Below, one piece after another: positions 25,541-60,621 of a stretch of 62,459 nucleotides of DNA; the stretch's first letter is position 1, and every line of letters starts with the position of its first letter. The translations under genes were made by a program, and so were the position numbers. The notes under the pieces were generated by a model, which had not been told where the DNA came from, made no database searches, and worked only from the letters and a program-made list of their open reading frames with translations. The stretch comes from Girardia tigrina (taxonomy: Eukaryota): assembly GCA_001938485.1 (NCBI GenBank), contig MQRK01249634.1, forward strand, positions 1-62,459. Reading direction: 5' to 3'.

Positions 25541-25591
25541 TNNNNNNNNNNNNNNNNNNNNNNNNNNNNNNNNNNNNNNNNNNNNNNNNNN

Positions 25592-25631
<40 letters not shown>

Positions 25632-25659
25632 ACAATATAATAATAATAATAATAACAAT

Positions 25660-26027
25660 TGAATCCCGAACAATCCCTATTAAGAACATTAAGGCAATTC
25701 TCATTTGAATTTGTATTACTATCACAATTAGAGTTATTACTACTCTCAGAAGATCTTTCATCTTTTGAAATCGTTCTAATTGGTTTTGTTATTCCTATTT
25801 TTAATCATTATTATTCGAACAATTTTTCTAAATCTTTTTAAAATATTTAATTTCTAAAAATATTAATTAAAATAATAATTTTAACCATTTCTTAATAAAA
25901 CACAAAATAATAAAAATGTTGTAAAATTATTAAAAATTAATTTCATTTAAATTTCAATATATATATATATATATATANNNNNNNNNNNNNNNNNNNNNNN
26001 NNNNNNNNNNNNNNNNNNNNNNNNNNN

Positions 26028-26073
<46 letters not shown>

Positions 26074-26286
26074 TGATTTTCTTTTCTTAAAAATATATTA
26101 AACTTAATTTTAATTGTTAATTTCAAAAATATAAACTTATAGTCAAAACGAATAGTCAATCACTTTAAATAAAAAATACCAACTTATATCTGGGTAAGAG
26201 AATCATCATTCTAAGTTCAACATACTCAAATCAACATACAGCATCAATACATTTACACATTCAAACAATTTTAATTATTCTTCACA
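25660..26286 (-). mobile_element. 5' part (LTR, TGGTAT PBS-like motif, leader, gag start) of a Gypsy family; second copy at 41600-42428
   Basis: Collinear with 41885-42428. Both begin TGTGA on the - strand and carry TGGTAT about 100 bp in. Confidence 0.7.
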
Positions 26287-26708
26287 ATCGTTGCGCTACT
26301 CTTCCTATTTTGTATGTTAATCAATGAGATATGGTGTCTGAATTACCTATGTAAAAGAGCTAATTGAGAGGGATGTTTCAGTGAGCTCTCTTAATCAAAG
26401 ATATAAATGAATATAAAAGGTAAATTTTAATTTAACGAAATTATATTAAAAATAAAATACAAACAGAAATATCACAAAGAAGAAAACGAAACAGGAAAAA
26501 GTTGATAGGAATTCTTTGTTTTGAGTGTGGTCTGGGAGTTATTTGAAGAGCAAAAGCTTGAAAGATAATGACTGATAATATTATTCCGATTTTTATTGTG
26601 GTAATTTATTGACTGGGTTTCTTTTGACACGAGATATCTGATAACTGACTGTCGGAAGTGTATATTGAATTTTGTATTTGAAAAAGAGTATGAATAAACA
26701 CGGTAGAG

Positions 26709-29109: not shown

Positions 29110-32100
29110 AGCTTTATTTTTTATACTTAAATAAATAAGTCACTGACTGCTTTCTGAATAATCTGTCACGCAATCTATCGGCTGCTCGTCTTCTTGATCA
29201 AAACTTTCACTACAGTCACCTGCGTTCTTGCCCTTCACGACCCCTCGTGAAGCCGTCGGACCCTCTACTGAAGTTATTTAACTGTCTTCAGTCACGTGCC
29301 TACCGTGCTACACGTGGTACAAAATTTCGTCAGTCTCCCCTTAATGATGGTGGCGGAACCCACTCCAAACTGCACAACTCAACTATGTCGTGCAAATTTA
29401 TTTCGCTAGTTTCACAAATACAGCGTTTCTACTTGTACGTTCCGCTGTGTGTTCGATTCTACGGGACGTCGAAAGCTGATCTTCGAAATTAACCGGCAGA
29501 GGCAATCGCCGCCGCTGCGCAAACATTGTTGATGCTCGAATTCGGAGAGGTGTTTTACAATGCCATCATGTTATCGATCAGATTTCTACTCTGATCTATC
29601 ATGCGCTTGATTGTTTGGTAACAGTAATTGATGATTTTGTTCCTGCAAAGCTGATTTCCGTACATAAACCGCATCTCGATACCCATCCCCGATAACAACT
29701 TCCAAATTGCCGCTTTAGCAGTAACTCCTATGGTGGGATGAATTCATTGAACACAACCTGAGAAGAATTACAGAAATTCCCGTCGCTTTCTAAAATGATT
29801 TTCCTCCGCACCAAGAATCAACCTTACAATCAACAAGTACCATATCGTTTCCCCTGATTGTGTGTATGACATGCATGGTGAAGCACTACCACGTTTCCTT
29901 GAAGCTGATCTTCGAAAATAACCGGCAGAGGCAGTCGCCGTCGCTGCGCAAACATTGTTGATGCTCAAATTTGGATCACCTTTCTCCCCTTCACTGGAGA
30001 GGGATCGATCGACGCACAACGAAGACATACCTTCACCACTGCGTCGACTTGTATCTCAGTGACTCGTCCTGGGCTCCAGGAAGCCAGAAGCACTATTATG
30101 AATCTCGTGCAGCGTTTCTAGGTTTTCCACTGACTCTCGCTCCCCCCATTAATCCTTATGACCGCCAATTCCAGTGACTTTCGTTGCTGACAACCAGTCA
30201 CTGGGTACCCGAGTGAGGCGATCTGCTTTGTTCTCCACTGAACCCACCAACTTCCACTTCAATTGCAGCCGCTCTTCTTCGATTATCTGCTTGATAGTGC
30301 TGATGCGAATTTTTACCAGCCATTCACTTATTCCACTGAATTTGACTGGTCCATCACCCGTCATTATATTCGTCAACCACCAGAACACTAAGGCGGAGTC
30401 GTTCATGATCTCGAAGTAATTCAGACCCATCGATACAATCACCTTTATCGCCTCATTTGTCGCTTCGAGATTTGCCAGGTTGATGTGAGCAACGTCATCG
30501 TCCTTGGCAGCTACGAGGCGTTCTCTACTAATGCTTCCACTATTTCTGCAAAAATATGGGTCGCGATTGATTTTGCGTCACACCACCCGCGACCTTGACA
30601 GTGGTCAGAAACTTTCCATCTATCGTTCATCAGATCATCTATCTCGAATCGCTTTGCCAATCTCTGTGTGATGTCCCCTACGCGCGGTCCCACGACATCA
30701 TCCATCAGCTGTTGCAGGTCTATTCTTTAAGAAAAGATTAAATGGCCCACCAGCTGACCGACCCGCGAAAACGATTTTTGTAGCGTTAAACTATCCGGTA
30801 ATTCAAACATTTTGTCATCCAGATACCATAGCAGTTCACCGTCAGTCTCGCGCACCTCGAGTCCGAGCACTCCTCCTTCGTTAATTTTCACCGGTGGCTT
30901 TGTTTCGAGCCTGAAACTGTTAAAAACAACCTAGAGGCTCAGCCTTACTTATCTCAACTGTAATGTCGTTATAGTATACGTCTGCAGCTTTCACCACCTG
31001 CTGATCCATCAATGATGTGCCTCATGATTTTTGGCACAACTGAAACCCAATCGCTTCAAGCAGTACTCCTGTCCTCTGTGTCTAATTATTTTATTCGTCA
31101 CAATCTGGATATATAATCGCTTCAAGTCGATTATTTCGAGCTACTTCCCAATCTTTTATTAGCTACGCCGATTTTCTGCGCAAACCAGGTTCTCTGTGGT
31201 GTAGTTGGACATGAATTCGTTAAAGACTCAGTAGCTCAGCACTTTTCTCATTTTCTCTTGGCCGCTGCACTGTTGCATGAGCGGAAGAATCGCTTTTGCC
31301 TTGGCCTTGAACGGGATGAAGCATTTATTGTTCTTCCATTCCAACAGCTCCTGGCTCACTTCTTCTTCCTACTGCTTTGCTGGCACATATGCAGCGGCTT
31401 TACGTCGCGGTCCACGAGCGGCCATCGAACTCGGCCAAAAAATCGATGTCTTCAAACCGCGTACGCACCGGTTGCTTCATGACGGTCATCGATACCCAGG
31501 GTTTGATCCATCCAAATTTTGGGACTCAACCTCTGTCTTGTACTCACATACCGAGTTAATTGATCGCGTTCATCACGAGAAGAATCTTAGTCCTTTGATC
31601 TGACAACATCCGGTACTACTAAAACGCGGCATTCAATCCGCTTTCGTCGAACTCGATCGGCATCGTTGCCCTAAGCCACACTTCGATTTTACGTACCGAT
31701 TTCTCCACTTGGTCCAATTTTGCCGGTGGAACTACCACTTTCGCAACGACTGTTTTCAAACAGTCCGTGTCGACTGTCCTTCGCATACATTCATCAAAAT
31801 AAGTTGCAGCTGCGTGTCACCGTACCCAAGCCATACCCTGCAAGAACCCTCTTGCGATGTGATCCGCCAGGCCGCAACTGAAGCATCTTCGCTTCTGCTA
31901 TGGCCATCGGTTTGAGGCTTGTTATGCTGTGTACTGGGTGCGCCGCTTCAAGGTCGCATATTCAAGTGTAAAATGCCATCTCCCGACACAGCAATAACAT
32001 TTCGACTCACTAGTATCTGATAACGCGAGCTAAATGAACCACCATTTCAAAATTTGATGTTTTCCCAGAGCCTCAGCTTACACACTTCTCATGACCGCAT

Positions 32101-32350
32101 AGGGTAGCCCTTTAATAAGAAGCCTCCGCACCAGATTACGGCCGCTGATCGTTTTGAGTCGATTATAAAGAAGTTCACTTTCTAGCCGAACACCAGTGTC
32201 GGGAGGCGGACTTCACCCATATTGGGCTTGGGGTAAAAGATTTCATGAGTGCGACGGCACTCTCTTCGAAATCCAGTTGCATCGCCTTGTTAAAACCCCG
32301 GAACACGATCGAAATTATAACGCTGAGTTTTTGTGCCACACTGCTTACCG
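29110..32350 (-). mobile_element. Decayed, GC-richer LTR retrotransposon of a distinct lineage, in a Gli intron
   Basis: RT/RNaseH remnants (WCDAKSIA, AHINLANLEA, MNDSALVFWWL, VGSVENKADRLTRVP), integrase-core remnant at ~29550-29730, purine-rich tract then TGTAGT LTR start at 29214. Confidence 0.75.
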
Positions 32351-32429
32351 CGTTATGAAAAATAGATTAAAATAAAAGGCCATAAAAACAATCATTTATT
32401 CGTTTAAATCATTAACTCACAAAGCACCT

Positions 32430-34342
32430 ATGTATTTATATATGTAATTAAAATTCAAAAATATCAATTCAAAATTAGTCCATTTGATTTTTCATTTTAT
32501 TATAGAGAAATAAGTTAATTTACTTTGCTTTTTCCCTTCCAGCTATTTTTACTTTGCAAAGTATAGGAGATTTCACGAGTGAATTATTCTATCTGAATCA
32601 CAGTCCTTCAATTCAAATCATTTAATAGTTGACTCCAATGATTTTACAAAATCAGAAACAGAAAGCACTGCAGCAGTAATGTCAATGTTATATCCTGGTT
32701 TTCTTTAACTTTATTTACAATTTAATTTTCATTCATCATATCGTCTCTTGCATCACCCTCTTCCAAATAGATGTTAAGATGTCTTTATCAGAAAGGATTT
32801 ATAAAATCTGAATTTACTCATTAAAATTCAACCAGTGGTTAAAATATAATAGGTTGTTGCAAAAGTAATGCAGGTTTTTAATTTTTTGTAATAACCGCAA
32901 TGTTATACGACTAAAGTATGTATGATGTTATATAATGTATTAAGTCATTTGAAAGCTTAATTTATACTCTTTCAGATATATTTGTCTGAAACGTATTATA
33001 ATGTTTCTATTGTTAATAATTTCGATTTTAATTGCAGATGTCAAAACGTGATTTTTGCAACATTTACTTCTACGAGTTCAAGCTAGGGTGTAATGCAGCT
33101 CAAACCGCTCAAAACATCAACGAAGTTTGGGGTAAGAGAAGTGTCAATGAATTAATGGTGCAGCGCTGGTATCAAAGGTTTCGTTCTGGCAATACCAGCC
33201 TAGAAGATGAGCTCATGGTAGCCGCCCATCCACGATTTACAATGATGAATTGAAGGAGCTGGTGGAAGGCGATCCACGCACAACTGTTCGAGCACTCACA
33301 GAAGAGCCTAATGTTGATCTCTCAACTATTTCTCGGCATTTGAAGCAAATGTGAAAGTTTTAAAAGCTCGATAAATGGGTGCCTCACAAATTGTACGAAA
33401 GTAAAAAAATCGTCGTTTTGAGGTGTCTTCCGTGCTTCTTCTGCGCAAGAAGAACGAAAAGTTTCTTGATCGGATTGTGACGTATGATGAAAAGTGGATT
33501 CTTACGAGAATCGGCAACGTTCGACACAATGGTTGGATCGCGATGAGGCTCCTCACCACTTTCAGAAACCGAAACTCCACCAAAAGAAGGTTATGGTGAC
33601 TGTTTGGTGGTCTGCAGCTGGTCTCATTCATCACATCTTTCTGACTACGGGTGAAACGATCACCGCAGAGAAGTACTGCCAACAAATTGACAAAATGCAT
33701 CACGAGCTCCGACGTATGTGCCCGAGATTGGTCAATATGAAGGGGCTACGCCCGGCGACACATAGCAAAACCGACCTTACAAAAGCTTATAGAATTGGGC
33801 TACGAAATTCTGCCTCATTCACCCTACTATCCGGATCTCTCGCCCACCGACTACCATTTTTTCAAGAATCTGGACAACTTCCTCCAGGGAAAATGCTTCA
33901 AAAACCAAGACGACGCCAAAAAAGCGTTTAACGTTTTCATTGCATCCAGAATATAGGAGTTCTACACTAGGGGCATCAATAAATTTGTTTCTCATTGGCA
34001 AAAATATATTGATTCTGATGGTTTTTATTTCGATTTATAAAGTTTATTCTGGGCTGAGTAACATTTGTTTCAAGTTTAGGTTGTTTTTGCATTGTTTTTA
34101 CAACAACCTAATAAATAGGATAAATTTACATATTCCTTTTGAAGAATCTGTTGAAAATAGGTCTGTTTGACATTAGAAAACGTTAACGTAGTAGTATGTT
34201 TCGTGCAATGTACTTAATTTTAATTAAAAGTTATGCAACAGTAAAAATACTAGGAATTAATGAATGATTACCTTCGAATGAATGAATTCAAATCTTGGGA
34301 CACAGGTTCTAACCGAATTTTCATTATAATATGGGTCCACTG
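32430..34342 (-). mobile_element. Internally deleted pogo/Tigger-like element hosting the mariner insertion
   Basis: Minus-strand end TA|CAGTGGACCC at 34342 and a Tigger-type C-terminal KKQSKLTYF at ~32510-32535. Confidence 0.5.
32849..34111 (+). mobile_element. Full-length but decayed mariner
   Basis: TIRs aggttgttgcaaaagtaatgca / tgcattgtttttacaacaacct, TA flanks. Fragments WVPHKL, TYDEKW, KLHQKKVMVTVWW, YYPDLSPTDY with stops and frameshifts. Confidence 0.92.
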
Positions 34343-34735: not shown

Positions 34736-37449
34736 GAATTTCTCAGCTGAAAAGCTCTGTTTTCATAAAGTAACATGCATTTAAGTCAGTAGTTAAAAAA
34801 CTGCATTGTATTTGAAAACCCCTTTTTAAAAATCTGATTAACTGCTAATATATGCATTCCGTCAGTATGACAGTGTATAGCTTATATATGTTACCATGAA
34901 AGATACTTACCATTTCATAAAGCTACTTCGGAAAAAGTAAATCAACAAGTTGCGCGCTTATATATGAGTATAAACAAATAATAAAATCATCATAAATCAT
35001 TATAAATCATTACCATAATTAAAATCTTTGCTTAAATTAAATTATATATACCGACACTGTAATATATCCTTCCTTTTGTCAACACAAAAGACTTAAACTT
35101 GGTTTTTATTTGTTTAATGAATGTATAGAAATACTATAGGTTGATACTCTATATACTATTTTCAATTAGGGGGCTTCAGAAAAGGCTTGATCTCATTTGG
35201 GGGGGACCTGCCGAACAAAACCTGATATAAATGAAATTTAAGTTAATAAATTTAAAATCAAATAAACATTTATTAAAATTAAATATTAAAAATATCAGTT
35301 TCCATCGGAACAAGACAATTAAGTCTCAAAAATTAAGTCTCGGATATTAAAAATTGAAGAAATGAAAAATTCAAGTAAATTTGAGAAATATATTTAATAT
35401 ATAAGAATGTAAAATAATATAAGAAAATATAAACAAACAATCTGAGATTTAATTTTTTTTTGAGTATGATGAATTAGTTAATTTTCATTTCGCTGATCAA
35501 GATTTAAATAATTAAAAATTATTTAAGATTAAAATCAAATTAAAAACTTTGTGTCAAATATTTTAAATAATACTTTAAAATTGTGTTTTTAATTTTTTCT
35601 AAATTTTACTGGAATCGTTTATTTTTAAAATTTATTTTACAAATTTGTAAATTATTTTAAAAAATTAAGTTTAAAAAAAATAAATCTGAAGCTTAATTGT
35701 CGGACTCTGTTTCCATATATCATAACCAAACAAAAAACTAATTAAATGATTTTTAATAATAAGAAAATATTATCCGCGTCCAAACATCACATACCGTTAA
35801 AAGTGTATTTCTAGAATCTATACCTTCACAACTCGAATGGTATAGTAAAGATACAATTCCGTACTATAAGAGAATATTTAAATGCGTCACTCCGAGAGAA
35901 AACATGGATAGATTTAGAAGACCAGCTTTCAGAAAAAGAATTTACATTAGATTAAATTTATACCTGTTGAATGCGTTATCCTTTTTCTTCGAAATTTCTT
36001 CTAGGGTTCAAATAACTTTTTTCATTCTCCGTACATCGTGTTTTATTTATTTTGAATTAAATATGTCTCTTCTCTACATTTTGAATATTTTGGATCATAG
36101 TCAACTCCTCAAAAGCTTCGATCTCCGTGAACTCTTCTTTGTGACTCATTTGCATCTTAATGCGTATTTTGTTATCCTCCCTTCATCAATTAATATTCTT
36201 TTCTAGAACATTTCATTTACGACTTCAAGAGTCTTTTATCAACCAATAATTCTTTTTTCATTAAATTCTATTTGTCTCCAATAAATGAAAATGAAACATT
36301 AACAGATTTTAAGACATGCTTTTCTCATCCCCCATAATTCTTTGTACCATATATTCACCGTCTCCTCTTAGACAAACATTATTATTAGTATGATATCAAA
36401 TTTCATTAAATATCCTCGAGTCTTTACTCTATCGTAATGTAAATTACGCTTATTAACGCGGATGACGTTAGTTTATTGCCGAGGGTAACATGATCTTGTA
36501 AATAAATGTCAATTCGATATTATTAATGAAAATTGTATTTTTATTCGGGTTTACAAAATTTCTTCATGCTATTAAATACTGATTATAAGGAATTAATTAA
36601 AATTTTCGATTCGCTGAATAATTTAATGTTTTTAATTTAAATTTTTTTCAAAAATTAAATAATAAAAAATCAGAGTTTAAAATCAAAAAAATCTAAAAGT
36701 TGATATATTTCAGTAGTAAATTGTAAAATAAGAACTTAAAAAAAAATAATACATTAAATAAAAGTTATTGCGTAAATTTATACATCAAGCCGCTACAAAC
36801 GTTTTTTATGAAATTAAATAGCTTTTTACAAATTAATTTTAAAATTAGATGTTTATATAAATGTTAAAATAATTTTATTGTTTTTCGAAAATTTTTAAAA
36901 ATACATAATAAAGACTTAGTTTAAATAAAAATTTCAACAAATAGTATGGGTTTATTAATAAATATTTTTAAAATTTTTTTCAGTTGATTGCATCTTATTT
37001 AAATGAAATAAATTAATTTTATAGGTAATAAAATTTTATAAAAGCATTCTAAAAATGATAAAAAAGTTTTAATTAAAAAGAAAAGTTCAAAAATATGTTA
37101 TCGAATATAATAAATTATTTTTTTAAGTTTTTACAAATTCATTGGATTTTATTTAATAATAATATTATTAAATTAATTTTATTTGTCATATAATTTTAAC
37201 AATGCATTTTTAAAATAATAAAAATTTGACCTAGTAAAAATTCAAAAATAAGTTATAGAATATAATAAATTATTTTTAAAGTTTAGAATGATTTTTACAA
37301 ATTGAAAAGTAAAATAAAATTTATGAAGCGAGACGAAAATTTTAATTAACGAAAAATTGTTTGAAAATTTCGAGTTGTGATATTGATAAAAATTTTGGTG
37401 TTGAATTATGGGTGTTGAAACTGATAATAATGAAAGTGGCATAAACGTA

Positions 37450-39000
37450 CACCGATATTTGGAAATATGACTCTCATTACTATAAAACCTAGAGTATGAT
37501 TCATAAGTCTGTTCACCCCCTCATATTTTGATTACTTCTTTTCTAACTAAAAATTTGACGTCATATTGATTTTGAATATTTGTTTATATATTGTTTTTTT
37601 ATGCAACATATTTGAATTTATATGTTAAATATTGAAATTTTCATTAATGACTTATTTTTTTAAATTTTAGATAAATTAAATGTCAAGAGTATTTAGTGAA
37701 TTTGAGCGTGGAATGATTGTTGCGCTTAAAAATGCAGGAAGTACATGGAATCAAATAAAGGTCGAACTATTTACAAGATATAATAGAAATATTTCAAAAC
37801 GTAGAATGCAAAAAATATGGGTGAAGTATTTAAAAACAGGAGAAGTGAAAGGTCATCCACGTGTAGGCAGACCTCATAAACTAAGCGCCAGATCAGAAAG
37901 AGTGATTAAACACATAAGTCGTTTAAACAATGATATTTCCACGTTAAATATTACAAGGATATTTAATTCTTCTTCCTCAAGTAAGTTATAAGTAAGTCGA
38001 CAGTCGAAAGGATTTTACAGAAATATGGAATACGGGTATTCAAAGCTGTAAAGAAACCTTTCCTTACCGCTAAATAGAGACAAAGAAGAATGCAGTTGGC
38101 TTCATTATATCAAAATTGGGATAAAGAAACTTGGTATTCTGTTACATTTAGCGATGAATGCATTTTCCAATGTTATAATCATCGTGGTAGATCAGACGAA
38201 CTAGAAATGAAAGGTTCAAACCCGGAAACATCCATGAAACCATGAGCCACGGAGCCAAAGTTCATGTCTGGGGTGTTTTTCGGCAAACGGGGTAGGTCTT
38301 CTTAGAAAAGTAGAAGGTTCAATCAATGCTCAAATGTACCAGGAAACTATAATACATGACATTGATATTATTGGAAAGTGCTTGGTATTTCCAAAACAAC
38401 AATTCATTTTTCAGCAAGATCTTGCACCACCACACCGTGCACTGTCGACATTTAATTTCTTAAAAAAGAAGGAAGTCAATCTTTTACCATGGCCAGCCAA
38501 TTCACCAGACGCAAATCCTATCGAAAATGTATGGGGACTTTTAAAAAGGAAATTATAGACGATAAGGTACACATCGTCAGAACAGCTGTGGGTGGCTGTT
38601 CAAAAAATATGGTACGAAATATGAAAAGACTATTGTAAGTCTTGTTGAATCCATGCCTAGGCGAATGAAAATGATAAAGGACATGAAAGAGCATTCAACT
38701 ATGTATTGAAAGTTCCACATAATAAATAATTTGTTAAAAATTTGATCTTTTTCTCAAAAAATAAGGGGAGTGAACAGACTTATGAATCATACTGTACTTT
38801 ATTTTTGTTTGTCCAATTGTCACTTCCAATTTTACATGTGACTTTTTCTATGTTTCTATTTGCAAAATCAATCATAGATTTGCCAGGATAAATTTACAAA
38901 TTTGGGCTATTCTTCTTAAGCTTTTCCAAGTCTTCTTTCTTAATTACATTCAAATCGGCCAGGGTATCAATAGTAACAATGTTTACTTTCTTTTCCAATA
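37450..39000 (-). pseudogene. Retroviral-type aspartic protease remnant, split by the Tc1 insertion
   Basis: Minus strand VNIVTIDTLADLNVIKKE at ~38990-38940, then VKLEVTIGQTKIK. Resumes across the TA site as VGFIVMRVIFPNIG at 37491-37450. Confidence 0.65.
37492..38794 (+). mobile_element. Tc1-like DD34E transposon, full length, decayed
   Basis: TIRs (g/c)agtatgattcataagtctgttcac, TA TSD at 37490-91 and 38795-96. Transposase fragments GRPHKLS, FSDEC, QQDLAPPH, SPDANPIENVW (34-residue spacing). Confidence 0.95.
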
Positions 39001-39305
39001 TTTCATTATGGACAATGCGTTTGTTACTCGCTTTTTCTTTTTTTCGTGCTAGAAATCAATGATTGGTTGTCTACAGCATATTTCGATTTACTATTGAGAT
39101 CATTATTAAAATCTACAATACTCAATATTTTTTCTGCTTTATAGTCCTTGTTTCATCTGAATTCCGAAGATAGGGGTCGGGCGCATTCGGACCCATAGGA
39201 ATGGGCCTCACTTGACAGCTTTTTGCTAGAACCTTAGCTTTAATAATAACCACATTTCTGGTTCCCGATGATTTAAAATTTTCATCCGCAACTGTTGGAA
39301 CTTCT

Positions 39306-39716
39306 TCAACAGTTTGTGTGGTTCTGAAAGCGGGAATGACGATGTTCTTGCTTGACCAAAAGATCCATCACTTCACCGAAAGTAACAAATTTTGAAGCAA
39401 GCCACCATATAAGGGGTATTATTGTGTGGTGGTAGACATGAAGAAATGTTATTTGGTTGTTTTTCTTTTGAAGAATAAAGAAGACAGTGTCGAGTAGTTC
39501 TACCAATTTAGAGATATAGAAAATGTAAATAACCCAGGCTAACATTATCGAGTCGCGATAGTCACTGTAATCCACCGGATACCAGAACAGATTAAAGCCG
39601 GTATTCAAAAGAGCGTATTTTGCGAACAAAACACACATATACGCCGACCAAATGACCAACATGAGATTGTTGGATATTATGACGAATTTTAAATTGAACG
39701 TCGATCTATTGGTCAT
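39306..39716 (-). pseudogene. elovl: Intronless ELOVL fatty acid elongase fragment (central part)
   Basis: SKLVELLDTVFFILQKKNNQITFLHVYHH (KxxExxDT and HxxHH motifs). Lacks the N-terminus and the C-terminal half. Confidence 0.9.
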
Positions 39717-39743
39717 TCATTATCAATATTATTTAAACAACAA

Positions 39744-40190
39744 TCATAATTTTCTGGAATTTTCCAGTACAAATCTTTGTAACGAGGTGGCAGCGTCCCG
39801 GGGTTGAGTACTCGGCATTTCCGGGACAGAAAATCCAATCTTACCGGCATTCGCCTGCCGCTCATCAATTTCATCTCCGCGGAAGAGTGGTTCGCGGGTG
39901 ATCATCTCAGCAAACAGGTTTTGTAGTTTAAGATCTCTGTGAATGACCCGGTGTAAATGAAGAAACAATAATCCCTGGAAGATTTGATAATCAAAACATT
40001 TTATAACGATCGCGTCCATATTGAACTCCAGATTATCGAGATACAGCCACAGAACCATATTTACATATTCAAATACGAGAAATAATTTTTTATTTTCTTT
40101 ATAAACAACTCCGTAAGTGCTTTCACAAATCTTTTCAATTTTAATGAAATCAAAAATGGAAATTTTGATATTATCATTTTTAGATGTCAT
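39744..40190 (-). pseudogene. cdk1: Intronless CDK1/2-like kinase fragment with two large in-frame deletions
   Basis: KIEKICESTYGVVYK | LFLVFEY...YQIFQGLLFLHLHRVIHRDLKLQNL | FAEMITREPLFRGD-EID. VAxKK, PSTAIRE, DFG and the T-loop are absent. Confidence 0.88.
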
Positions 40191-41054
40191 TTGATTTAAA
40201 TTCGAAATAAAATTTTGATTGACAATCGACCGTTAACACTACGAAACAGAATTTAATTTTTGATTAGCAAATCGATTTTCAAATAAAAAAAAACTGAACA
40301 TCGATCACCAATTTTCGCCTACAACTTCAAAAACAAATTTACAAATTTTGACCCAATGTCAATGCGCTTCAATTTCCACTTCACAAATATGCAATTTTTA
40401 GAACTCAAATTCTTTTTTGATCAAAATGATTAACAATCACCGATTTCAGCCGATTTTAAACAATTTCAAACCATATCACCACTTTTTAGATTTAATTTTG
40501 TGCGCCCAAACAACGCAAACCCCAATCATTTTCAATAATTATTTTTTTCGATAATTCATTTTTTTTCTTATTTATTTAATTATTATTTTTTTAAAGATAA
40601 AAATTGCAAACAAAAAATAAAAAAATCACCACTCAAAATACCAAAACTAATTTCTAAAACTAATTCAAAACAACTATATCACAATTATCGAATCAATTCT
40701 TTAAGTTCGATGTGCGTAAATTGTCAATCTCGAAAGAACCACTGAAATGGAGTTGCAAAACATCTTCGTTAGAATTAATTGATGCTTCATTGAAATTTAA
40801 AGTCAATAATTTGATTTGAATTTTTAGATTTCGACATTTTCACTAATTTTGACTAGAAATTCCGATAAATCATCTTCGAACATTTTTTTCAATAAACAAA
40901 GATTATTTCAACATTCTATTTTTTGAAAATTCCAAACAATACTCCGGTCTTCGCGATGGAACCACAATTCGACAGAGTTCAAATCGTAACGAATTTTTCG
41001 AATTTTATTTTTTTTTCCAATTTTTTTGAGTTCATTTCGATATCGACCCCCCAA

Positions 41055-41575
41055 TGTGAATCGAACAATATATATTAATCAATCTGGAACAGCCCTTGAT
41101 TATATTTTAATCGTTTTTTTGTTGCATCCTTTCAATTTATTGCATGGAAGAGTGTTGTCAATGTTATCCTACATTCAGGGATCTCTGAGTACAAAGCCAG
41201 ATGGGACGTACCTCCGAGCGTTATCCCTGTGAAACTAGAGCTCTCTTCTCTAGGCTAAAGCGTCCAAAGCTGAGGCATTTGCTGTTTGAATGGTCGGCAG
41301 TAGTCATGTATCGTTATTGGGCTAGCAATCCAGTTTCTTGAATGAACCGGCTGTGGGGAGTCGTGACCCTGCAGTCGTGTGGTCGATTGCATCGAAATGA
41401 TCCAGGGTTTCTAATCATGGTGAGGGGTGTTGGGAAGCCGGTTCGCCGGAGGAGCTTAGGCATTGATCTCAACATTTAGGGAGTGCCTTTTGAAGCCATA
41501 AGCGTCTCAGACCTCCTAAAAAACATCAGACTTAATACCTTTATAGGGGATGAGAGGATCCTGCATTACCCTACA
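41055..41575 (-). repeat. Putative 5' LTR (521 bp) followed by a PBS-like motif
   Basis: On the minus strand: TGTAGGG...ATTCACA termini, AATAAA ~80 nt before the end, then immediately T-TGGGGGGTCGATATCG (tRNA-Pro-like start). GC-richer than the flanks. No partner LTR in the window. Confidence 0.65.
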
Positions 41576-41599
41576 ATCATGCTTCAAAATCCAATACCA

Positions 41600-42428
41600 A
41601 TTTCCATCTATTTTTACCAATTCCTTCATTATTTCTACGATATTCTTCTCTTTATAGAATACACTTCTCATTCTTGTTTTCCAGCTGTCTCTTTGTGTTT
41701 TCTCATATTTACTTATCGCCTCTAGGGTCATGAATGCTGTAACTGATATTACTTTTCTTTATTCCTTAAATCCCAAAATCTTTGAATATCTCTCAAAGCT
41801 TATTAATTTTATCTAATTTTGTTTCTGGCCCATCGAATATCGCCGGTCCTTTGATAATTGGTGTCACGTGGTCATGTGCCACCATGTTAAGAACATTGAG
41901 ACAATTTTCATTAGCATTTTTATTATTATCTCATTTGGAGTCATTACAGATCTCGCAAGATCTTTCACTGTAGGACATCACTATGATTGGTTTTTTTAAT
42001 TTCTATTTTTAATCATGATTATTCGAACAATTTTTTCTAATTCTTTTTAAAATATTTAATTCCTTAAAACATAATAATTTTAAAATAATAATTTAAAATA
42101 TAATAATTTTAACCATTTCTTTATTAAAACTGAGAATATAAAAACTTTATAAAAATTGTTAAAAATGAATTTAATTTAAATCTAAATAAATGCTTTTCTT
42201 TTTGTTTTTAAAAAAATATTAAACTTAATTTTAATTGTTCATTTAAAAAGTATATAAACTTATCAAATTATTAATTTAACTATGTTCAAATAGGCAATCA
42301 TTGTAAATATACAAAAAATACCAATTTCCATCTGAGTTGGAGAATCACCATTCTAATTTCAACATACTCAAATCAATATAAAATATCACTGCATTCACAC
42401 ATTCATATAATTTAAAATATTCCTCACA
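41600..42428 (-). mobile_element. 5' LTR, leader and gag N-terminus of a Gypsy element (same family as 25660-26286)
   Basis: Gag-like PIIKGPAIFDG...AFMTLEAISKYEK; shares leader with 25660-26286; interrupted near 41575. Confidence 0.7.
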
Positions 42429-42801
42429 AAAATATTTGCGAAAATTGTAATTTATCTCTATTTATAAATTTTCATTTCATGATAAGCATCATGCACTGCT
42501 TTGAGATTATTTCTTATGTCCGGATCGTTTCTGGAAAATACTTTCAATCGATTTTCCATATTTGAAGAATAAAATTTTAAAGAAATCTTGACGCCATATT
42601 AAATTGTGGTAAAGAAATGAAGTCAAATAGAGGAATATTAATATTTTTACAAATAACATTTGTTTTTGATAATATTAAAATAACGAATATTTTCGTATCT
42701 CACAAATTATAAAATTATAATATAAATTTAATTCGAGTCAGCTTATATATGTGTACATATTTATATTTCTAATAAATTATTTTTCGAAAATTTAATTTCA
42801 G

Positions 42802-43703: not shown

Positions 43704-46700
43704 TGTGGAATAATTATGTAAATATTAATGTATTGGAATGTGTGTTGTTTTAATAATCATTATTGTAAATTTTAATTCAAATATAATTTTCTTAGTTAAA
43801 TATTCTCCTTCACAACAGTGGCGTCATAAGCAGGATGAAAGCCGATAGTGGAGATCACCAGTCGAAATTACTGGAAGTAATTTTGAATAGAATCCTGAAA
43901 AAAGACTCCGCCAAAACTCCGAAAACATTCGAAGAAGGGGACGATACTGTCCAATTTTTGAAATGCATGGATGTATTTATGCGGCAACTTGAAATATCGG
44001 AGGAAACACAAGCTGATTTCTTCATGGAATACTTGGAGGAAGATGTTCAGTGTTTTTTGAAGTCGCAGTGGGGTTACACCCAAAATCAAAAGAGTTTCGA
44101 ATGGCTCAAGGAAACTTTTTTGAAGCTGTTCGGATGAAAGAAGTCAGATATTTCATCGTGGATGAAACTATTCGGCATTCGACAGAAGGATGGCCAGTCA
44201 ACGAAGGAGTTTATGAAAGAAGTAAGAATTCGTTGTTTTAAAGAATTACCGGAGTTGATCTCCGAAGAAAGAGAGCCCAAAACTCTCCAAGTTTTTATAA
44301 ATGGTTTTTATAAATAAGAGACAATGAATGACAGAGCTCAAAAGGCACTAAAAGTGTTGCAGCCTAAAACTTTGGATGAAGCATTCGAGATGATAAAAAA
44401 AGAATGTGTAACTCAAGATATGTCGGCAACAGTAAATGTGCTGGCCGAGAATGATGAAATTCGAATGCTTAGGGACAAAGCTTCCGAACTGAACAAACGT
44501 ATTACTTCATTGCAGGAAATGGTAAAAATGCTGCAGCAAGAAAGACAATCGAGTCAATGGAAAGGTGATAATAGAACGAGAAATCCTGTCAAAGAAACAA
44601 GTGGATGCTGGAATTGTGGGAGCAGCAGTCACATTCTGAGAGACTGTAATAAGTCTCGATTCTGCAAAAAATGCAACAAAAAGGGGCATATAGATAAGTT
44701 TTGTCTAAACGGAAAACGTAAATCAGTCCATGTGTTCGAGTCTGCCAGTATATCCAGTAATGAAAGTGAAACAGACACGGGAACAGGTACGGAAGAACCG
44801 AGCATTTGTCATATTTCAAATGCAAAGAAGTCGTATGCCAGAGTGGTGAAAGAAACTGTTCCGAAATAAAAGGAACAGAATAATCTTTGAGTAAAGAAGA
44901 TCAGTTATAAAGTAAAAGATCAGAACAAACCAATGTGTTACGGTCGGATCAATGGGAACAGTAAAAAGATCTTATAAGACACCGGAGCCGAAGTGAATGT
45001 TATCAGCAAAGACATGCTAATGGAGTTGCAAGATTCAGATAAAACATTGAAAACCAGACGTTCATCCAGAAAAATCAAGTGTGCAGATGGATTTACAGTG
45101 CCTGTACGAGCGGAAGTATCCCTGATAGTTGAATTGGGTGCTAAAGGGAAAAGTTGTAATTTCTTTGTTGTGGATGGATTAAGCCCGGATATAATTCTTG
45201 GGATATGAAGCATGAAGAGTCTTGGGATTAAGATTGATCTCGATAATAATGGTGTTAATAGTGGAACAATTTTCGTTCCATTCGTTTCGAAGGTGAATGC
45301 AGATACGACAGTCCCGACAAATCAGTTAAACTGAAAGGGCACTGCTTGAGGAGTCGGAAGCAGTATGCGCCCTATGAGACTCAGACTGTAGCAGCTGCCG
45401 TTACACGAGAAGCGCCTGAAAGTGAGTTTCTCTTATCCCAATTTAGATGTGTGAATGATAGCAATAGAGACAATATTATTAGTTTAGTGAAAGAATTCAG
45501 AGACGTATTTGATATAGGCTTGGTGCGGAACGCTGTGCATAAAATAGAGCTTAAAGATAGCTCTGATTTGCTCCGATACAGGAGCAAACGAGGAGAATTC
45601 CGGTGGCGCTCCAAGAAACAGTTGATGAGTTTGTTGAACAGTTGCTACAGAGTGGAACGCTCCTATAGTGATTGTGCCAAAAAAGGACGGAGATATTCGA
45701 CTTAAAGTAGATTACCGGAGACTAAATCAAAAGACTAAAATTCCATCATTTTCTGAAACACAACAACTTTTTGATACCTTGGGAGGAGCGAAACACTTTA
45801 GCACAATGGATTTGGCTGCAGGATGTTATAACATAAGTCTTGCAGAGTGTGATAGAGAGAAAACAGCGTTTAGTACTAGAAAAGGACACTGGGAGTTTTT
45901 GAGGTTGCCAATGGGCTTAGCGGCAGCGCCGGCCACTTTACAAAGAGTTATGAAAGCGATGTTAAAGAAGAAGACTGGAGGGAATGCTTGATATATTTGG
46001 ATTATATTATAGTTTTTGGGAAGACACGAGAGGAACATTTGATCAGACTGCGAAAAGTATTATCACAAATCAAAGAAGTGAGTCTAAAGATTGCACCAGC
46101 AAAGTGCCAATTTTTTGCAAGGGATGTAAAGTACCTGGGCCATAGAGTATCAACCAATGGAATTTCAATGGACGAGGATAAAATCAAGTGCATCCAGGAG
46201 TGGCCACAGCCAGAGTCTCAAGAAGAACTGAGAAAATTTCTTGGACTTTGCGGATACTATCGCAATTATATTAAAGAGTACGCCAAAATTGTTGCACCAT
46301 TAGAAAAGGCATGTAAAGACTGCTGGAACAAAGCTAGGACTAGAAAATTACACTCGTTGCAATGTTCAGCCTGTTTGGGTGACGCATTTCTTCATTTGAA
46401 ACAATGTTTAATGACCGCGCCAATTTTAGCAGTTCCGAATAGCTACGACCAATTCATATTGGATACGGATGCATGTGATAACACGATTGGATGCGTCCTT
46501 TCTCAAATGCAAAGTGGTGATGAAAAAGTAATAGCCTACGCTTCGCATAAATTGTCTACAGCAGAACAACATTATTGTGTGACACGAAAATAGTTGCTGT
46601 GTGTCTATAAATACACAAAAATGTTTAGACACTATTTATTTGGAAGAAGATTTAGTATAAGAACTGACCACAAAGCTCTATGCTGGATGATGAATAGGAA

Positions 46701-48482
46701 AACACCGAGTACAAGTCAATTTAGTTCATGGCTCAATGAATTGAGTGTCTGTGATATGGATATCCAATACTGGAAAGGAGAAGAACATAAGAATGCGGAC
46801 GCTCTATCCCGAGCGCCAGAACAATGCCAGCAATGTGCAATGAGCCACGAAAATCAGAAGGCAAAACGAAATGTTAAATATTACAATGAAAATCAAAATG
46901 ATAAAAAAGCTGTTGTCTACTGCCGGCGGATAGCAATGGAAGAAGAAGAGGTCTGTCAGACGGATGATAATAATCTGGCTTTGATAATTAAATTTATGAA
47001 AAACAAAAACGTTGAAGATCCTGGAGAACTTCAGAATACAGAAAGAGAAGCCCAGGTGCTATGGAGAAATCGGAAGGACTTCAGATTTACAAGGACTTGC
47101 TATATATTATTCGCCAAGAGGACTATAAACTTCTTCTACTAAAAAATAGAAGAGATGAAATCATCGGCCATGCCCATATGTTGCATGGGCACATCGGAGT
47201 CAGCAAAACAACAGCTCTTTTAAAGGAGAAATTCTACTGGCCAGGTATGTCTTTTGATATTAGAATAAGAATAGGAAAATGTAAAGAATGTCAGAGCCGA
47301 AAAAATCAACGACCAGACAGAAATAAGACTCATGGATCCTTAAATGCAGGGTACCCCTTTGGAACAATAACTTAACAGGACCACTTCCAGAAAGTAAAAA
47401 TGGATGTAGATACATCTTGGGAATTATTGATAACTTTTCAAAATACCCCATGCTGATACCGCTGAGAAATATGACTGCGAAAACGATATGCAAATCCATT
47501 TTGACAAGTGGATAGTGCAATTTGGAATCCCGGATAGGATACAATCAGATAGAGGTACTGCTTTTGAGAGCGAGATCGTACAGGAACTTTGTGTTCTTCT
47601 CGGAATTAGAAAATCTCGGAGCTCACCATATTATCCTCAAGGTGACGGGGTAATTGAGAGACTATTTGGTACAGCAAAAGACATGCTTTACGTAACAGCG
47701 AAGTCATCTGGATATGAATGTGAAGAAGCGATTCCCTTTGTTGAATTTGGACTAAGAAATAAAATTTGTAGAAGCACTGGATTCTCTCCCTTCGAGGTGA
47801 TTTTTGGTCGGAAAATGAGGTCTTTCTACTCGGAAAAGAAAGTGAGTCCAGCAAATGATGGAAACTATTGTAAATATATCACAGAGCTTTAACAAGTGTT
47901 ACAAGTGGTGAGCCAACAGATCAAGACCAAACAAGAAATTAAAAAGCCAGCTACATCAGGTTCAGGGGTTTGTCTGGCAATTGGTGATCTAGTGCTGGTT
48001 AGGATACTACCGCGAATCAAAGGAATCGATATGCCAAGATACGAAGGGCCATATGCGTTGATCGGTAAACTGGGGAAGCATGCGTACAGATTAAGACGGA
48101 TTAGTGACGGAAGAATAATTGAGAGAAATGTGGTGGATATCAAAAGATTGAGAACATCACAAAATGACACGAGAAAATCAGAAAAGGCTACAACAATTAT
48201 GTCAAAAAGTATCAAAAATGATCATCATGATGTACATGAAGAAGACCAGATGCCAGAGGAAGATCGACGAAATATTAATAAAACAAGAGTGAGACGCAAT
48301 CCAGAAATTAAGTTCGAGACCGACAGAAGCCTAAAAGATACAGAAATTAAGTTGCCGAACAAGGCGAGTGTGGAATAATTATGTAAATATTAATGTATTG
48401 GAATGTGTGTTGTTTTAATAATCATTATTGTAAATTTTAATTCAAATATATTTTTCTTCGTTAAATATCCTCTTTCACAACA
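43704..48482 (+). mobile_element. Full-length Ty3/Gypsy LTR retrotransposon with 114-bp LTRs, decayed
   Basis: LTRs 43704-43817 and 48369-48482 (TGT...ACA, about 4 differences), AATAT TSD, tRNA-Ser-like PBS TGGCGTCATAAGCAGGAT overlapping the gag ATG. Gag with two CCHC knuckles, protease DTGA, RT IYLDY, RNaseH DTDAC, integrase with GPY. Confidence 0.97.
45325..45373 (+). promoter_or_regulatory. Candidate -1 ribosomal frameshift signal between protease and RT
   Basis: G TTA AAC TGA, then stem AGGGC-ACTGCTT...AAGCAGT-(ATGC)-GCCCT. The -1 frame is open into ORF 45346. Confidence 0.7.
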
Positions 48483-49438: not shown

Positions 49439-49859
49439 CACGGGAAATCTCACCCGNNNNNNNNNNNNNNNNNNNNNNNNNNNNNNNNNNNNNNNNNNNN
49501 NNNNNNNNNNNNNNNNNNNNNNNNNNNNNNNNNNNNNNNNNNNNNNNNNNNNNNNNNNNNNNNNNNNNNNNNNNNNNNNNNNNNNNNNNNNNNNNNGATT
49601 GTGTTTAATCGCAATTACATTACTTCTTAGAGGAATTAATAGCGTTTAGCTAAATGAAATGGAGAAATAACAGGTCTGTGATGCCCTTAGATGTACGGGG
49701 CCGCACGCGCGCTACAATGGCAGTAACAGCGAGTTTTATTCCTAGCTAGAAATGGCCGGGTAACCTGCTGAAACACTGTCGTGTCAGGAATAGTGGATTG
49801 AAATTATCCCACTTGAACGAGGAATTCCTAGTAAGTACAAGTCACTAACTTGTGCTGAT

Positions 49860-50589: not shown

Positions 50590-53500
50590 TAATATTTAAT
50601 GGTTTTCTTATCATTTTTAATTTTAAGATATTTAATAGATAGATTAAAAAGATATTTTTTATTTTTAAATAGATATTTAATTTTTTATGATTTTCTTTTA
50701 TTATATCATTTTTAATTTTTTTGAAATATTTAAAAAACACATTAAAAATATTTGATTTTTAAATACGTATTGATTTTTTAATAATTGTTTTATTATATCA
50801 TTTTTAATTTTAAAATATTGAATAAGCATATTAACATTAAAATATTTTACCTTTTAAATTAAAAAATAATAAATTATTCTGGCGAGATGAAAATTTAAAT
50901 TAACCCCTCATATCCCCCTTCTTTAAGAATTTTCTCAATTTTTCCACGTTTCGATCTAAAATTCTTCCATCTTCATTTATTAGTTTATACCTTCTGTCAT
51001 GTGTTTTCTCTATCACTTTATACGGTCCTTCATATTTAATTTACTCTTTATCCCCGTTTCCACCTTGACTAGTATTTCATTTCCGATTTCAAAATTTCTT
51101 TTGGTTGTTGCGTCTTCTTTTTCTTGCTGTAACTTTATATCTTGACTATGTCATCTTTCTCTGTGTATTTTCTTACCGAATATAATTTCTACTGGGCTCT
51201 TCCCTATTGTTTTCTGAAAAGTTGCATTTAATGTGAATTCTATTTCCGGTAGTAGTTCTTCCCAGTCTGATCCTTTCTTTGTATGTAACGATGCGTTTAA
51301 ATATTCTCTAATTGTACGAAATTGTCTTTCTACTATTCCATTCGTGTTATGATGGTACGGACTCGAGTAACACATTTTTATATTCATTGATTCTGCCATG
51401 TCTTTGATTACCTTCGCTTCGAATGTCTTGCCACAATCTGTATGTATTTCCTTCGGTGCTTAAAATCTCAAGATCCACTTGGTCATCATGATGTCTTTTA
51501 TGGTTATTTCATCCTACTTGATAATGGCTGTCAAAGATATGTACCTACTAAACTGATCTATGATTGCAACAATATACTTTTTTCTTCTCCAAGTCTCCTT
51601 TAGTGGTCCGCATATGTCTATGTACACTTTCTCAAATGGTTTTTTTTTGACAAGTTGCAACCGTTCTTCGTTTGTAGCGGTCGTTAATGTTTTACTTTTT
51701 TTGGCATGCTTCACATTGTCCAAGTACTTCTTTTATTATTTCATTCCGATTGATCATGTCATAATTTTCTGAGATGTATTTCGTTACTTTCTCTGCGCCC
51801 GCGTGCGACAATAGCGTATGTATTTGTATGATCCTTTCTTTTCTTTTTGACTTTGGTATCCAAATCTTCCCCATGTTTGTTCTTATTATTCCATCTTCAA
51901 TTGTAAGCTTTCTGTCTTTACCTGAACTTGGGTCTCTTTTAATTTCTTCTATTTCTTCTTGTTGATATTTGAATATCTGCGATGTGTCCAGCACGTTGAT
52001 TCTTCGAGTCTTTATCTTCATCATTTTAGCATCTTCATGAGCCATCAAGCATTGTGTACATGTATCACATGTATTCCGAGACAACATATCCGCGTTGGAA
52101 TGATCTGTTCTTTTTCTGTATTCTAAGTGTATGTCCAGGCTTGATAAATAATTTATCCATGTCTGAAATGGCGTCGTTATCGGTTTTCTTTTGTTTTAAC
52201 CATAAACGCCTTATGATCCGTTCTCAAAGTGAATCGCTTCCCGTATAAATAATGATTAAAATGCTGACAGAAGTAATACATTGCCAACAGCTCCTTCCTC
52301 GTAATGCAGTATCCTTTTTCATGATTATTCATAGAGTGTGAACCATATGCAATAACTCTCTCACGTCCGTCCTTGTCTCTTTGAGATAATACTACTCCAA
52401 TCGTGTCGAAACTGGCATCAGTGTCCAGTATAAATTCTTTCTGGAAGTCTGGGAATCCTAGAATCAGTGGTGTTGTTAAGTCCTCTTTCATCTCTGTAAA
52501 TGCTTCATCACATGCGTCTGTCCATAACAATTTCTTCTTGTTCAATCCACACAGTTGTTCCAATATCTTGGCCTTTGTTGCGAAGTCCTTAATGAATCGT
52601 TTGTAATAATTGCAAATTCCAAAGAAACTTCTTAGATTCTTAACACATTTCGGTTTTTCAAATGTCTTTATGGCTTCTAATTTAGATGGATCCGTCTGTG
52701 TACCTTTATCATTAATTACATGTCCCAAAAATTTAACTTCCGTTTTTAAGATATGGCACTTTTCCGGATTAATTCTTAAACCTGCTTTCCCGATTTGGTT
52801 CAATACTTTATCCAAAGTTTCTTAATGTTGTTCCAACGATTTTGAAAATATAAGAATGCCATCTATATATACCACTGTCTGTTCTATGCCTCCGAGCACC
52901 TTTGTCGTGAGTTCCTGAAATTTTCCCGGTGCTGCTGCTATACCAAACGGCATTCTATTGAAACAAAATTGTTCTAGCTTTGTGGAAAATGCTGTTTTTA
53001 GCTTTGAATCTTCCTCTAGTTCGACCTGGTAGTATGCATTGCCTAAATTGATTGATGTGAAATATCTGATTCCATACAATCTGTCCATCATTTCTATCAT
53101 ATTTGGCATAGGAAATGCCTGTCTCTCCGTGACTAGGTTTAGCTGTCTAAAATCCAAGCAAATTCTAACATCATTCTTTTCTTTCTTTCATGCACAAATC
53201 ATCGGTGTATTCCATGGTGAATTACATTTCTTAATAATGTTGTTTTCCCACAAATTCTTAATAGTCTCATCGATCTTTTCTTCCAGATTAACTGGTTGCC
53301 TATGTGGTCTAAGGTTAATTGGAGGTCCTTTCGTGTCTATTCTATGTTTAATCATCGTCGTACATCCGATATCCCATTTATCCACCATAAAAACTCCTTG
53401 ATGTTTTTTTTAACAATATCCACAATCTTTAGTTTATCTGCAATTTTCATAATTTCCATGGCTCTTTTGAATCTTTCCTCGTTTGTAACCTTACGTCCAA

Positions 53501-60590: not shown

Positions 60591-60621
<31 letters not shown>

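Follow-up and report, generated by a model that had tools for sequence, protein, structure and literature searches.

CDK1-like and ELOVL-like gene fragments fused head to tail in transposon debris of Girardia tigrina: a possible decayed composite

On the minus strand of Girardia tigrina contig MQRK01249634.1 (the 62,459-nucleotide stretch of DNA analyzed here, hereafter the window), fragments of two unrelated host genes, one encoding the cell-cycle kinase CDK1 and the other a lipid elongase of the ELOVL family, are fused head to tail in a single orientation. The CDK1-like open reading frame (ORF; 39744-40190) comes first and is followed, after 27 bp and in the same reading frame, by the ELOVL-like ORF (39306-39716). 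This fusion had been described in an earlier note on the same DNA, where it was attributed to an LTR retroelement carrying captured genes. The reading that we favor, with confidence and doubt about evenly balanced, is that the region is made up of dead pieces of host genes, forming a decayed composite amid transposon debris, and that no LTR element with cargo is demonstrable here. Neither of the two ORFs contains a complete catalytic domain.

If the region did represent an LTR element with cargo, a cell-cycle kinase and a lipid elongase would have been transduced by one such element in an animal, echoing the capture of oncogenes by retroviruses. The evidence favors gene fragments that are dead and drift neutrally, of a sort common in repeat-rich genomes, and the ORFs at 39744-40190 and 39306-39716 should not be annotated as cdk1 and elovl paralogs. 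An already broken CDK1 mosaic is present at least twice, with different neighbors in each place, and could for this reason mark gene-fragment shuffling in the host genome.

Truncated CDK1-like and ELOVL-like ORFs

The CDK1-like ORF (39744-40190, minus strand) consists of 148 codons without an in-frame stop. Its best kinase match is to the Pfam Pkinase profile (E = 3.2e-11, profile positions 65-132 of 263), and CDK1 from PDB is matched with E = 1.6e-20, in three separate short stretches. The kinase homology claimed previously is thus genuine, but the ORF is not a whole gene: it covers about one-third of the kinase, its similarity falling into three blocks and two internal segments being deleted, and its last ~40 codons show no similarity. 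An apparent resumption of CDK1 similarity in another frame past the third block yielded no PDB match and was dropped. The CDK1-like blocks, together with ~86 bp of upstream sequence and a short tail, make up a module at 39783-40276 (minus strand) that is repeated elsewhere. This module runs without a break through one intron position of L002, which is the closest CDK1 gene that could be used for comparison, and because of this continuity, the CDK1 part looks RNA-derived; the edges of the blocks do not match exon ends of L002. Runs of A do not exceed 7 at the module, and its 5' flank is not matched by any direct repeat of at least 11 bp, as it would be in a target-site duplication (a poly(A) tract and such a duplication may both have eroded); there is also no LINE or SINE 3' component at the fusion. 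An exact pattern across a CDK1 block join had 0 matches in the JGI metagenomes.

The ELOVL-like ORF (39306-39716, minus strand, 136 codons) shows similarity to elongases over 39372-39716, with E = 2.7e-26 for Pfam ELO (profile positions 27-138 of 242) and E = 4.4e-26 for ELOVL7 (residues 56-168 of 288). Both the 27-bp spacer and the ELO homology are as described before, but what follows the spacer is only an internal fragment, cut at both ends, that includes the region of the HxxHH box. The similarity stops within one codon of an intron position found in oyster (L005 and L006) and coral (L007) genes, and a GT comes next. That this end coincides with an intron position which oyster and coral have in common suggests that the fragment derives from genomic DNA or an unspliced transcript.

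Of the two pieces that had been described as intronless, the CDK1 module is continuous at the L002 intron position, whereas the ELOVL piece, which ends at an intron position, is uninformative in this respect because the stretch that it covers is a single exon, without an intron, in the oyster gene. Searches of protein collections found no close copies of the ELOVL-like ORF, the best match being 45% identical. This lack of other ELOVL copies is weak evidence because the searched collections include very little from the host species; in a control for host coverage, a mariner ORF from the window retrieved one 94% relative, the next ones being at 72-78%. Exact look-up of eight window ORFs in the protein collection found 0 of them. 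Within the window, no further CDK1 or ELOVL pieces were detected over the 37 kb downstream and the 22 kb upstream.

A second, neutrally drifting copy of the CDK1 module

The CDK1 module is the only part of the region that is seen in more than one copy. The only other copy found, and hence all second-copy evidence, comes from a single short, low-coverage contig, L001 (721 bp, ENA, from ERZ2271649), which is 90.3% identical to the window over 503 bp. The protein of this copy (P0025) is 82% identical to the CDK1-like ORF and has the same block structure and the same deletions, such that an independent assembly reproduces the internal joins between the CDK1 blocks. Because the deletions are shared by the two copies, the module was already broken when it was copied. 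The two copies share their first base, and the DNA ahead of it is unrelated: similarity is lost upstream of 40276, both flanks differ between L001 and the window, and L001 contains neither the leader that precedes the module in the window nor the ELOVL piece that follows it. The flanks of L001 have no match in the window, Pfam or PDB.

Comparison of the two copies, a check suggested in the earlier note, gives dN/dS = 1.00, from just 23 differences distributed 7/7/9 over the codon positions. The copies drifted neutrally, with no protein-level constraint, and with their shared deletions this argues against functional cargo. To judge from the sequences, the module belongs to a small repeat family or is a duplicated pseudogene. 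The multiple cargo copies that the earlier note proposed to look for are seen for the CDK1 module, which occurs in at least one other place, but not for the ELOVL piece and the leader, which do not accompany it; and the proposed CDK1-ELOVL pair as the cargo of a family finds no counterpart in the single short contig, where the module has no leader before it and no ELOVL after it.

A nested Tc1-like transposon and a questionable protease remnant

Past the ELOVL-like ORF on the minus strand, the unassigned stretch at 38797-39305 is bordered by a Tc1-like DNA transposon on the plus strand, which is nested in this unassigned sequence and together with its flanking TA occupies 37490-38796. The inverted ends of this element (37490-37520 and 38766-38796) are 31 nt long and 94% complementary, with TA at both sides, and its transposase, which matches DDE_3 of Pfam with E = 3.6e-7, is split into three separate ORF pieces and broken at least two times. 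With terminal inverted repeats, TA target duplication and a DDE transposase, 37490-38796 is a Tc1/mariner element, in agreement with the earlier identification. No other terminal inverted repeats and no Helitron-type ends were found around the block.

The same cannot be said of the aspartic protease that had been recognized at 38897-39055, within the stretch 38797-39305 (minus strand). The resemblance is at the level of a motif, and the putative remnant is interrupted by one stop and then by the Tc1-like element. Its pieces have no Pfam match at E<=10, no meaningful PDB match and no BLASTP alignment to a Gypsy protease of the window, whereas Gypsy protease pieces of equal size from the window (76 and 53 aa) match Pfam aspartyl-protease profiles (2e-5 and 0.013, respectively). 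The D-T-x-A...N-V-I motif of the remnant does align, in tblastn, with the active-site region of two window Gypsy proteases, at a non-significant E of 0.5-1, an observation that speaks somewhat against the composite interpretation. When an 81-aa open piece was compared with 1.84 billion representatives, a lone bacterial MBG-repeat protein was retrieved, by 11 summed weak stretches, and this match was rejected as spurious. The protease reading was further held to rejoin across the TA site of the Tc1-like element, but the 27-codon open stretch on the far side (37409-37489, minus strand) has no protease match, and its openness is uninformative because all three frames are open there, for 27-92 codons. 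Farther along the minus strand beyond the Tc1-like element, no reverse transcriptase (RT) or integrase similarity was found down to ~33 kb, and none of the retroelement domains gag, protease, RT, RNase H and integrase could be detected in cis.

The 521-bp LTR-like unit

Direct reading confirms that a minus-strand unit of 521 bp (41055-41575) begins with TG at 41575 and ends with CA at 41055, and that a TGGGGGG string, previously likened to a primer-binding site (PBS), lies two bases past this CA, at 41053-41047 (minus strand). The unit also contains TATA-like and AATAAA strings and is, on these features, a candidate LTR only. TG occurs 59 times per kb in the window, and CA followed within 0-3 nt by TGG occurs 327 times, or 12 times if TGGGG is demanded; because such strings are frequent by chance, the combination of TG..CA with a TGG motif is not evidence of an LTR. 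No second copy of 41055-41575 was detected in the 62-kb window, which spans 41 kb on the side where a 3' LTR would be expected, by blastn with word sizes 9 and 7 under relaxed scoring or by nhmmer, which returned only the self match. The identification of the unit as an LTR is therefore not sustained: it has no second copy in 62 kb, and its terminal strings do not rise above chance. Nor did searches detect a repeat of any part of 38800-41800 inside the window.

The composition of the unit does not set it apart either. Its GC-rich core (~41130-41520, 47-53% GC) belongs to a compositional block that runs upstream beyond 41575, to ~41880, and the 5' edge of the unit coincides with no change in composition. 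RNA folding of this core was no better than that of shuffled sequences on either strand (z = -0.6 and +0.5), Rfam searches of the region gave no match at E<=1, and an exact pattern from the core had 0 matches in the JGI metagenomes. Open stretches of at least 40 aa on both strands of 40277-42000 and 37409-39372 had no Pfam match, and the 62-kb window contains no tRNA genes. Between the unit and the CDK1 module lies an AT-rich 'leader' (40277-41046, minus strand), which has no Pfam match and is absent from the second copy of the module; the distance from the TGGGGGG string to the kinase-like ORF is ~855 bp, in good agreement with the ~850 bp given before. With no paired or repeated LTR, gag, protease, RT, integrase or target-site duplication detected, the proposal that an LTR element was the carrier of the two fragments is not supported.

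Origin of the fused fragments

A mosaic produced in some way by reverse transcription or recombination is plausible because the fragments are fused in one orientation, the CDK1 part looks RNA-derived and the CDK1 module has another copy. Under the composite scenario, which is the one we prefer, the CDK1 module would have arisen by reverse transcription of a spliced cdk1 mRNA, whereas the ELOVL piece, comprising part of an exon and the start of an intron, would have come from genomic DNA or an unspliced transcript; the two would have been joined secondarily, by insertion, repair or recombination. The Tc1-like transposon arrived later, and neither ORF is expected to yield a working protein. Several observations do not fit comfortably with this scenario: the shared orientation, common frame and 27-bp gap are better accounted for by one chimeric event than by fragments coming to lie together by chance, and the CDK1 module lacks the poly(A) and target-site duplication of a classical processed pseudogene. 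Such a single event can be envisaged, as a genuine although unlikely contender, in the form of a chimeric retrocopy produced by an RT of the LINE or LTR type that switched templates from an elovl transcript, unspliced on its 3' side, to a cdk1 mRNA, the latter being copied to its 5' end with two more internal jumps and the product or its transcripts then being recopied. Chimeras of this kind, both bipartite and tripartite, are documented (PMC2104539, PMC13174262), and the direct head-to-tail joining of fragments of two unrelated genes in one orientation, without a long spacer, the missing intron position of the CDK1 part and the deletion edges that are not exon ends agree with this origin, as does the common start base of the two module copies, which is expected if it corresponds to the 5' end of the RNA template. 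However, poly(A), a target-site duplication and a LINE or SINE 3' component are all missing, the L001 copy has no ELOVL after the module, and the end of the ELOVL piece at an intron position requires that the template was unspliced.

The explanation offered originally, in which the region constitutes the 5' portion of an LTR retroelement, comprising the 5' LTR, PBS and leader, with gag replaced by transduced cdk1 and elovl followed by a protease remnant, and with the 3' LTR and the remainder of pol deleted, appears decidedly unlikely. Transduction of host fragments by LTR elements (PMC3726574) and accessory domains in Burro elements (PMC6431247) are known, and the TG..CA unit with its TATA-like and AATAAA strings, the TGG-led string two bases on and the alignment of the D-T-x-A...N-V-I motif with two window Gypsy proteases (E 0.5-1) can be accommodated. 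Against this stand the single-copy status of the unit over 62 kb, its chance-level terminal strings and its featureless 5' edge, the failure of the protease pieces where real ones of equal size pass, and the lack of gag, RT, RNase H and integrase downstream on the minus strand; furthermore, the cargo is neutral, L001 shares neither the leader nor ELOVL, and the list of Burro accessory domains includes no kinase or ELO domain. Very unlikely, in our assessment, is a more elaborate possibility, that a non-autonomous retroelement family uses the CDK1 module as a building block and shuffles host-gene fragments into varying combinations by repeated template switching, with the window and L001 copies as members and the 521-bp unit as the LTR. 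Finally, that the two ORFs belong to ordinary live genes as exons, or that an assembly chimera placed them side by side, is scarcely credible: the ELOVL piece does have an exon-like end, where a conserved intron position is followed by GT, and the CDK1-ELOVL junction is seen in this one sequence only, but no other exon of either gene occurs in the 37 kb downstream or the 22 kb upstream, the CDK1 blocks abut in one ORF from which essential kinase parts are missing, with the joins reproduced in L001, evolution is neutral (dN/dS = 1.00), and no run of N lies closer than 8 kb to the region.

Relationship to known gene-fragment mosaics

Among DNA transposons, Pack-MULEs and Helitrons carry mosaics of gene fragments (PMC6431247) and resemble the composite in that unrelated, usually non-functional fragments lie side by side; an origin from a genomic exon and intron would suit the ELOVL piece. 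Here, in contrast, there are no bounding inverted repeats or Helitron ends, and the CDK1 part looks RNA-derived. Burro, the giant Gypsy elements of planarians, include AIR1, Smc, MATH/TRAF, BIR, ankyrin, BCL2-like and env-like accessory domains (PMC6431247). The setting, an AT-rich invertebrate genome full of Gypsy copies, and the notion of host-like domains inside a retroelement are common to both, but the Burro domains reside in a huge intact gag-pol polyprotein, whereas the present region has no gag-pol, and neither a kinase nor ELO is among the listed Burro domains.

LTR retrotransposons with transduced host-gene fragments have been described, in particular, maize Bs1 and those from surveys of rice and sorghum (PMC3726574; reviewed in PMC6431247). 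The co-orientation of the fragments and the absence of an intron from CDK1 where this can be tested are similar, and the fragments would sit at the gag position if the LTR frame were right; unlike those elements, the region lacks paired LTRs, a demonstrable PBS or polypurine tract, any gag or pol domain, and a copy in which the unit and the fragments are linked. Processed pseudogenes and their duplicates are closer to the CDK1 module, which is continuous at an intron position, degenerate, neutral and present in more than one copy, but differs in having no 3' UTR or poly(A), in missing the 3' rather than the 5' end of the coding sequence and in containing two internal deletions.

Chimeric retropseudogenes, bipartite or tripartite, formed by template switching in mammals and Magnaporthe (PMC2104539, PMC13174262) differ from the present case in that here poly(A), a target-site duplication and a LINE or SINE 3' component are missing, the ELOVL piece ends at an intron position, and the L001 copy has a different partner. 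The points of resemblance are that different cellular transcripts are joined directly and in one orientation, that the 5' component extends to a constant 5' end, that the products are non-functional, and that several copies can exist.

Fragments of CDK1 and ELOVL genes

The earlier note described the minus strand at 37450-41575 as an LTR retroelement carrying captured CDK1 and ELOVL genes ahead of a protease. The ORFs are real, the retroelement was not demonstrated, and the locus is most likely ordinary gene-fragment debris. It lies within a 4.6-kb block of ordinary composition (~37350-42000), both flanks of which contain only 11-18% GC. The CDK1-like ORF (39744-40190, minus strand) starts ~855 bp after a TGGGGGG string and matches Pfam Pkinase (3.2e-11) and, among solved structures, best CDK1 (1.6e-20), ahead of CDK2. 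The homology to kinases and CDK1 holds, but this is no gene copy: three short CDK1-similar blocks abut one another, with two internal deletions, so that roughly one third of the kinase remains, and the absent parts include segments essential for kinase function. The last ~40 codons yielded no match, and no further CDK1 or ELOVL pieces were found elsewhere in the window.

A search of 5.8 billion proteins retrieved a protein (P0025) with 82% identity to the CDK1-like ORF and the same three-block structure. This second copy lies on a 721-bp contig (L001; ENA ERZ2271649) that aligns with window positions 40276-39783 over 503 bp (90% identity), an alignment that takes in ~86 bp before the start codon; the CDK1 module is, then, a repeated one. 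On both sides of the module, the two sequences are unrelated: L001 contains neither the AT-rich leader that precedes the module in the window nor ELOVL after it, so in the only other copy available, CDK1 and ELOVL are not conserved as a cargo pair. The two copies differ at 23 sites within the ORF (7/7/9 over the three codon positions), and the dN/dS, proposed in the earlier note as a check among copies, is 1.00 for these 23 differences. Given the same block structure and this ratio, the module was already broken when copied and has drifted neutrally since. This repeated, pre-broken mosaic is the one mildly interesting feature of the locus. After the module, L001 continues, unlike the window, with 44 open codons (575-721) that matched nothing in Pfam, PDB, or the window and may derive from a further gene. 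JGI metagenomes were scanned for two exact patterns, one across a join of CDK1 blocks and one in the core of the LTR-like unit, and neither returned a match.

Separated from the CDK1-like ORF by a 27-bp spacer, the ELOVL-like ORF (39306-39716, minus strand; ELO family, 2.7e-26; human ELOVL7, 4.4e-26) covers an inner portion of the protein, truncated on either side, with 113 aligned residues free of stops and frameshifts; like the CDK1 piece, it is a dead fragment. The earlier description of the piece as intronless is uninformative, because the matching stretch of two oyster ELOVL genes (L005 and L006) is itself a single exon. The similarity ends within one codon of an intron common to oyster and coral (L007) and is followed by GT, which suggests that the piece consists of part of an exon and the start of its intron, derived either from genomic DNA or from a transcript that had not been spliced. 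In a beetle gene (L008), that intron is absent. The ~575 bp beyond the ELOVL similarity gave no match. An 81-aa open piece after ELOVL had a single match among 1.84 billion representative proteins, which was rejected as a spurious, repeat-summed one.

Signatures of the proposed retroelement

The 521-bp unit (41575 to 41055, minus strand) was read correctly: it starts with TG and ends with CA, and TGGGGGG lies two bases on. In the window, however, the string "CA, 0-3 nt, TGG" occurs 327 times and TG 59 times per kb, so these terminal strings are not evidence of an LTR. Sensitive blastn and nhmmer searches of the 62-kb window returned only the self match; accordingly, the unit has no LTR partner there, despite 41 kb of sequence in the direction expected for a 3' LTR. 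No change in composition coincides with its 5' edge, and no tRNA genes were found in the window for comparison with the putative primer-binding site. The GC-rich core of the unit (41130-41520; 47-53% GC) is conspicuous in a 30% GC genome; it matched no protein family, Rfam family, or other part of the window, and folds no better than shuffled sequences.

The putative protease remnant (38897-39055, minus strand) depends on a single short motif, which has another residue in place of the D-T/S-G glycine. Queried separately, its pieces had no match in Pfam at E<=10 or in PDB, and BLASTP against Gypsy protease produced no alignment, whereas the positive controls, protease segments from the window's two genuine Gypsy elements (76 and 53 aa), match Pfam aspartyl-protease models (2e-5 and 0.013). 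The sole support comes from two tblastn matches (E 0.5-1) to the active-site region of these Gypsy proteases, so that the protease assignment is inconclusive at best. Beyond the remnant, no resemblance to gag, RT, RNase H, or integrase was found on the minus strand. The Tc1-like transposon at 37490-38796 (plus strand) was confirmed: it has 31-nt inverted ends and TA on both sides, its DDE transposase is interrupted in at least two places, and it arrived later than the gene fragments. The phase is compatible across it, as had been reported, but immediately past the element each of the three frames stays open for 27-92 codons, so this compatibility carries no weight.

Genomic setting

The window is AT-rich (~30% GC) and dense with transposon remains. 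A mariner transposase ORF (3039-4028, plus strand; HTH_48 and Transposase_1) is open for 329 codons, and a second mariner fragment lies near 33.5 kb (33494-33931, plus strand). The closest public relative of the former is 94% identical (Logan run SRR13496040) and further ones only 72-78%, indicating that the host species is sparsely covered by searchable collections; none of eight window ORFs was present on exact look-up in a protein collection with such sparse coverage. A Gypsy element (43704-48482, plus strand) is bounded by 114-bp LTRs with TG..CA termini and 96.5% identity, the 5' LTR being followed directly by a TGG-led string; its gag zinc knuckle, its protease, and its RT/RNase H lie in frames broken several times. 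A second Gypsy family is represented at 50590-56382 (minus strand), at 17.3-20.4 kb (minus strand), and, as inverted fragments, at 34.4-35.9 kb. One copy (50590-56382) has ~325-bp AT-rich LTRs that are 96% identical, and another internal copy shows 87-93% identity. Weak AT-rich similarity to its LTR is dispersed over the window, including both flanks of the CDK1/ELOVL block. Further remains are integrase pieces (5.9-7.0 kb) and RT pieces (57.9-58.5 kb and 61.0-61.3 kb).

On its upstream side, the CDK1/ELOVL block adjoins a 550-640-bp repeat (41882-42429 versus 25675-26287; 66% identity), so its boundary there is a further repeat rather than unique sequence. At 4170-4319, 12870-13011, 25502-26072, and 60582-60715, arrays of 8-bp period, in both orientations, each surround a 50-base N run. 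A stretch of 103 nt (49716-49818, plus strand), directly after an N run (49457-49596), gives an isolated match to the eukaryotic SSU rRNA model (positions 1502-1604; 69.5 bits); it may derive from rRNA or belong to a masked feature. A 47% GC block at 30000-32400 (minus strand), unlike the remaining window in composition, includes long open stretches, four of which had no match in Pfam.

Origin of the locus

As an intron-containing comparator, we used the nearest real CDK1 gene fetched (L002; Logan SRR33002330, 1-1096), which is 68% identical to the central block of the module and whose exons are GC-rich (up to 60%), while its three introns are AT-rich and very short (about 41-82 nt). The module is uninterrupted across the single intron position directly spanned, which points to an RNA template. 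The block edges fall inside L002 exons, not at their ends; on this gene structure, simple exon skipping does not explain the deletions. Most likely, a spliced cdk1 mRNA was reverse-transcribed, the two deletions arose by template jumps or later losses, and two or more copies were then made of this mosaic, which at the present locus lies against a fragment of an elovl gene.

That a single template-switching event produced the entire CDK1-ELOVL chimera is somewhat less likely than a later joining of the two pieces by insertion or repair, although two copies do not discriminate between these routes. Around the block, searches for poly(A), a target-site duplication, and terminal inverted repeats detected none apart from the ends of the Tc1. 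Still less probable is an LTR element comprising the 521-bp unit, the leader, and CDK1/ELOVL cargo, for which the terminal strings are present as read but none of the defining features was found. Debris of gene fragments remains the preferred reading. Neither a kinase nor an ELO domain figures among the published accessory domains of the planarian Burro elements (PMC6431247). Chimeric retropseudogenes (PMC2104539) are an established kind, as are LTR elements that have captured fragments of genes (PMC3726574).
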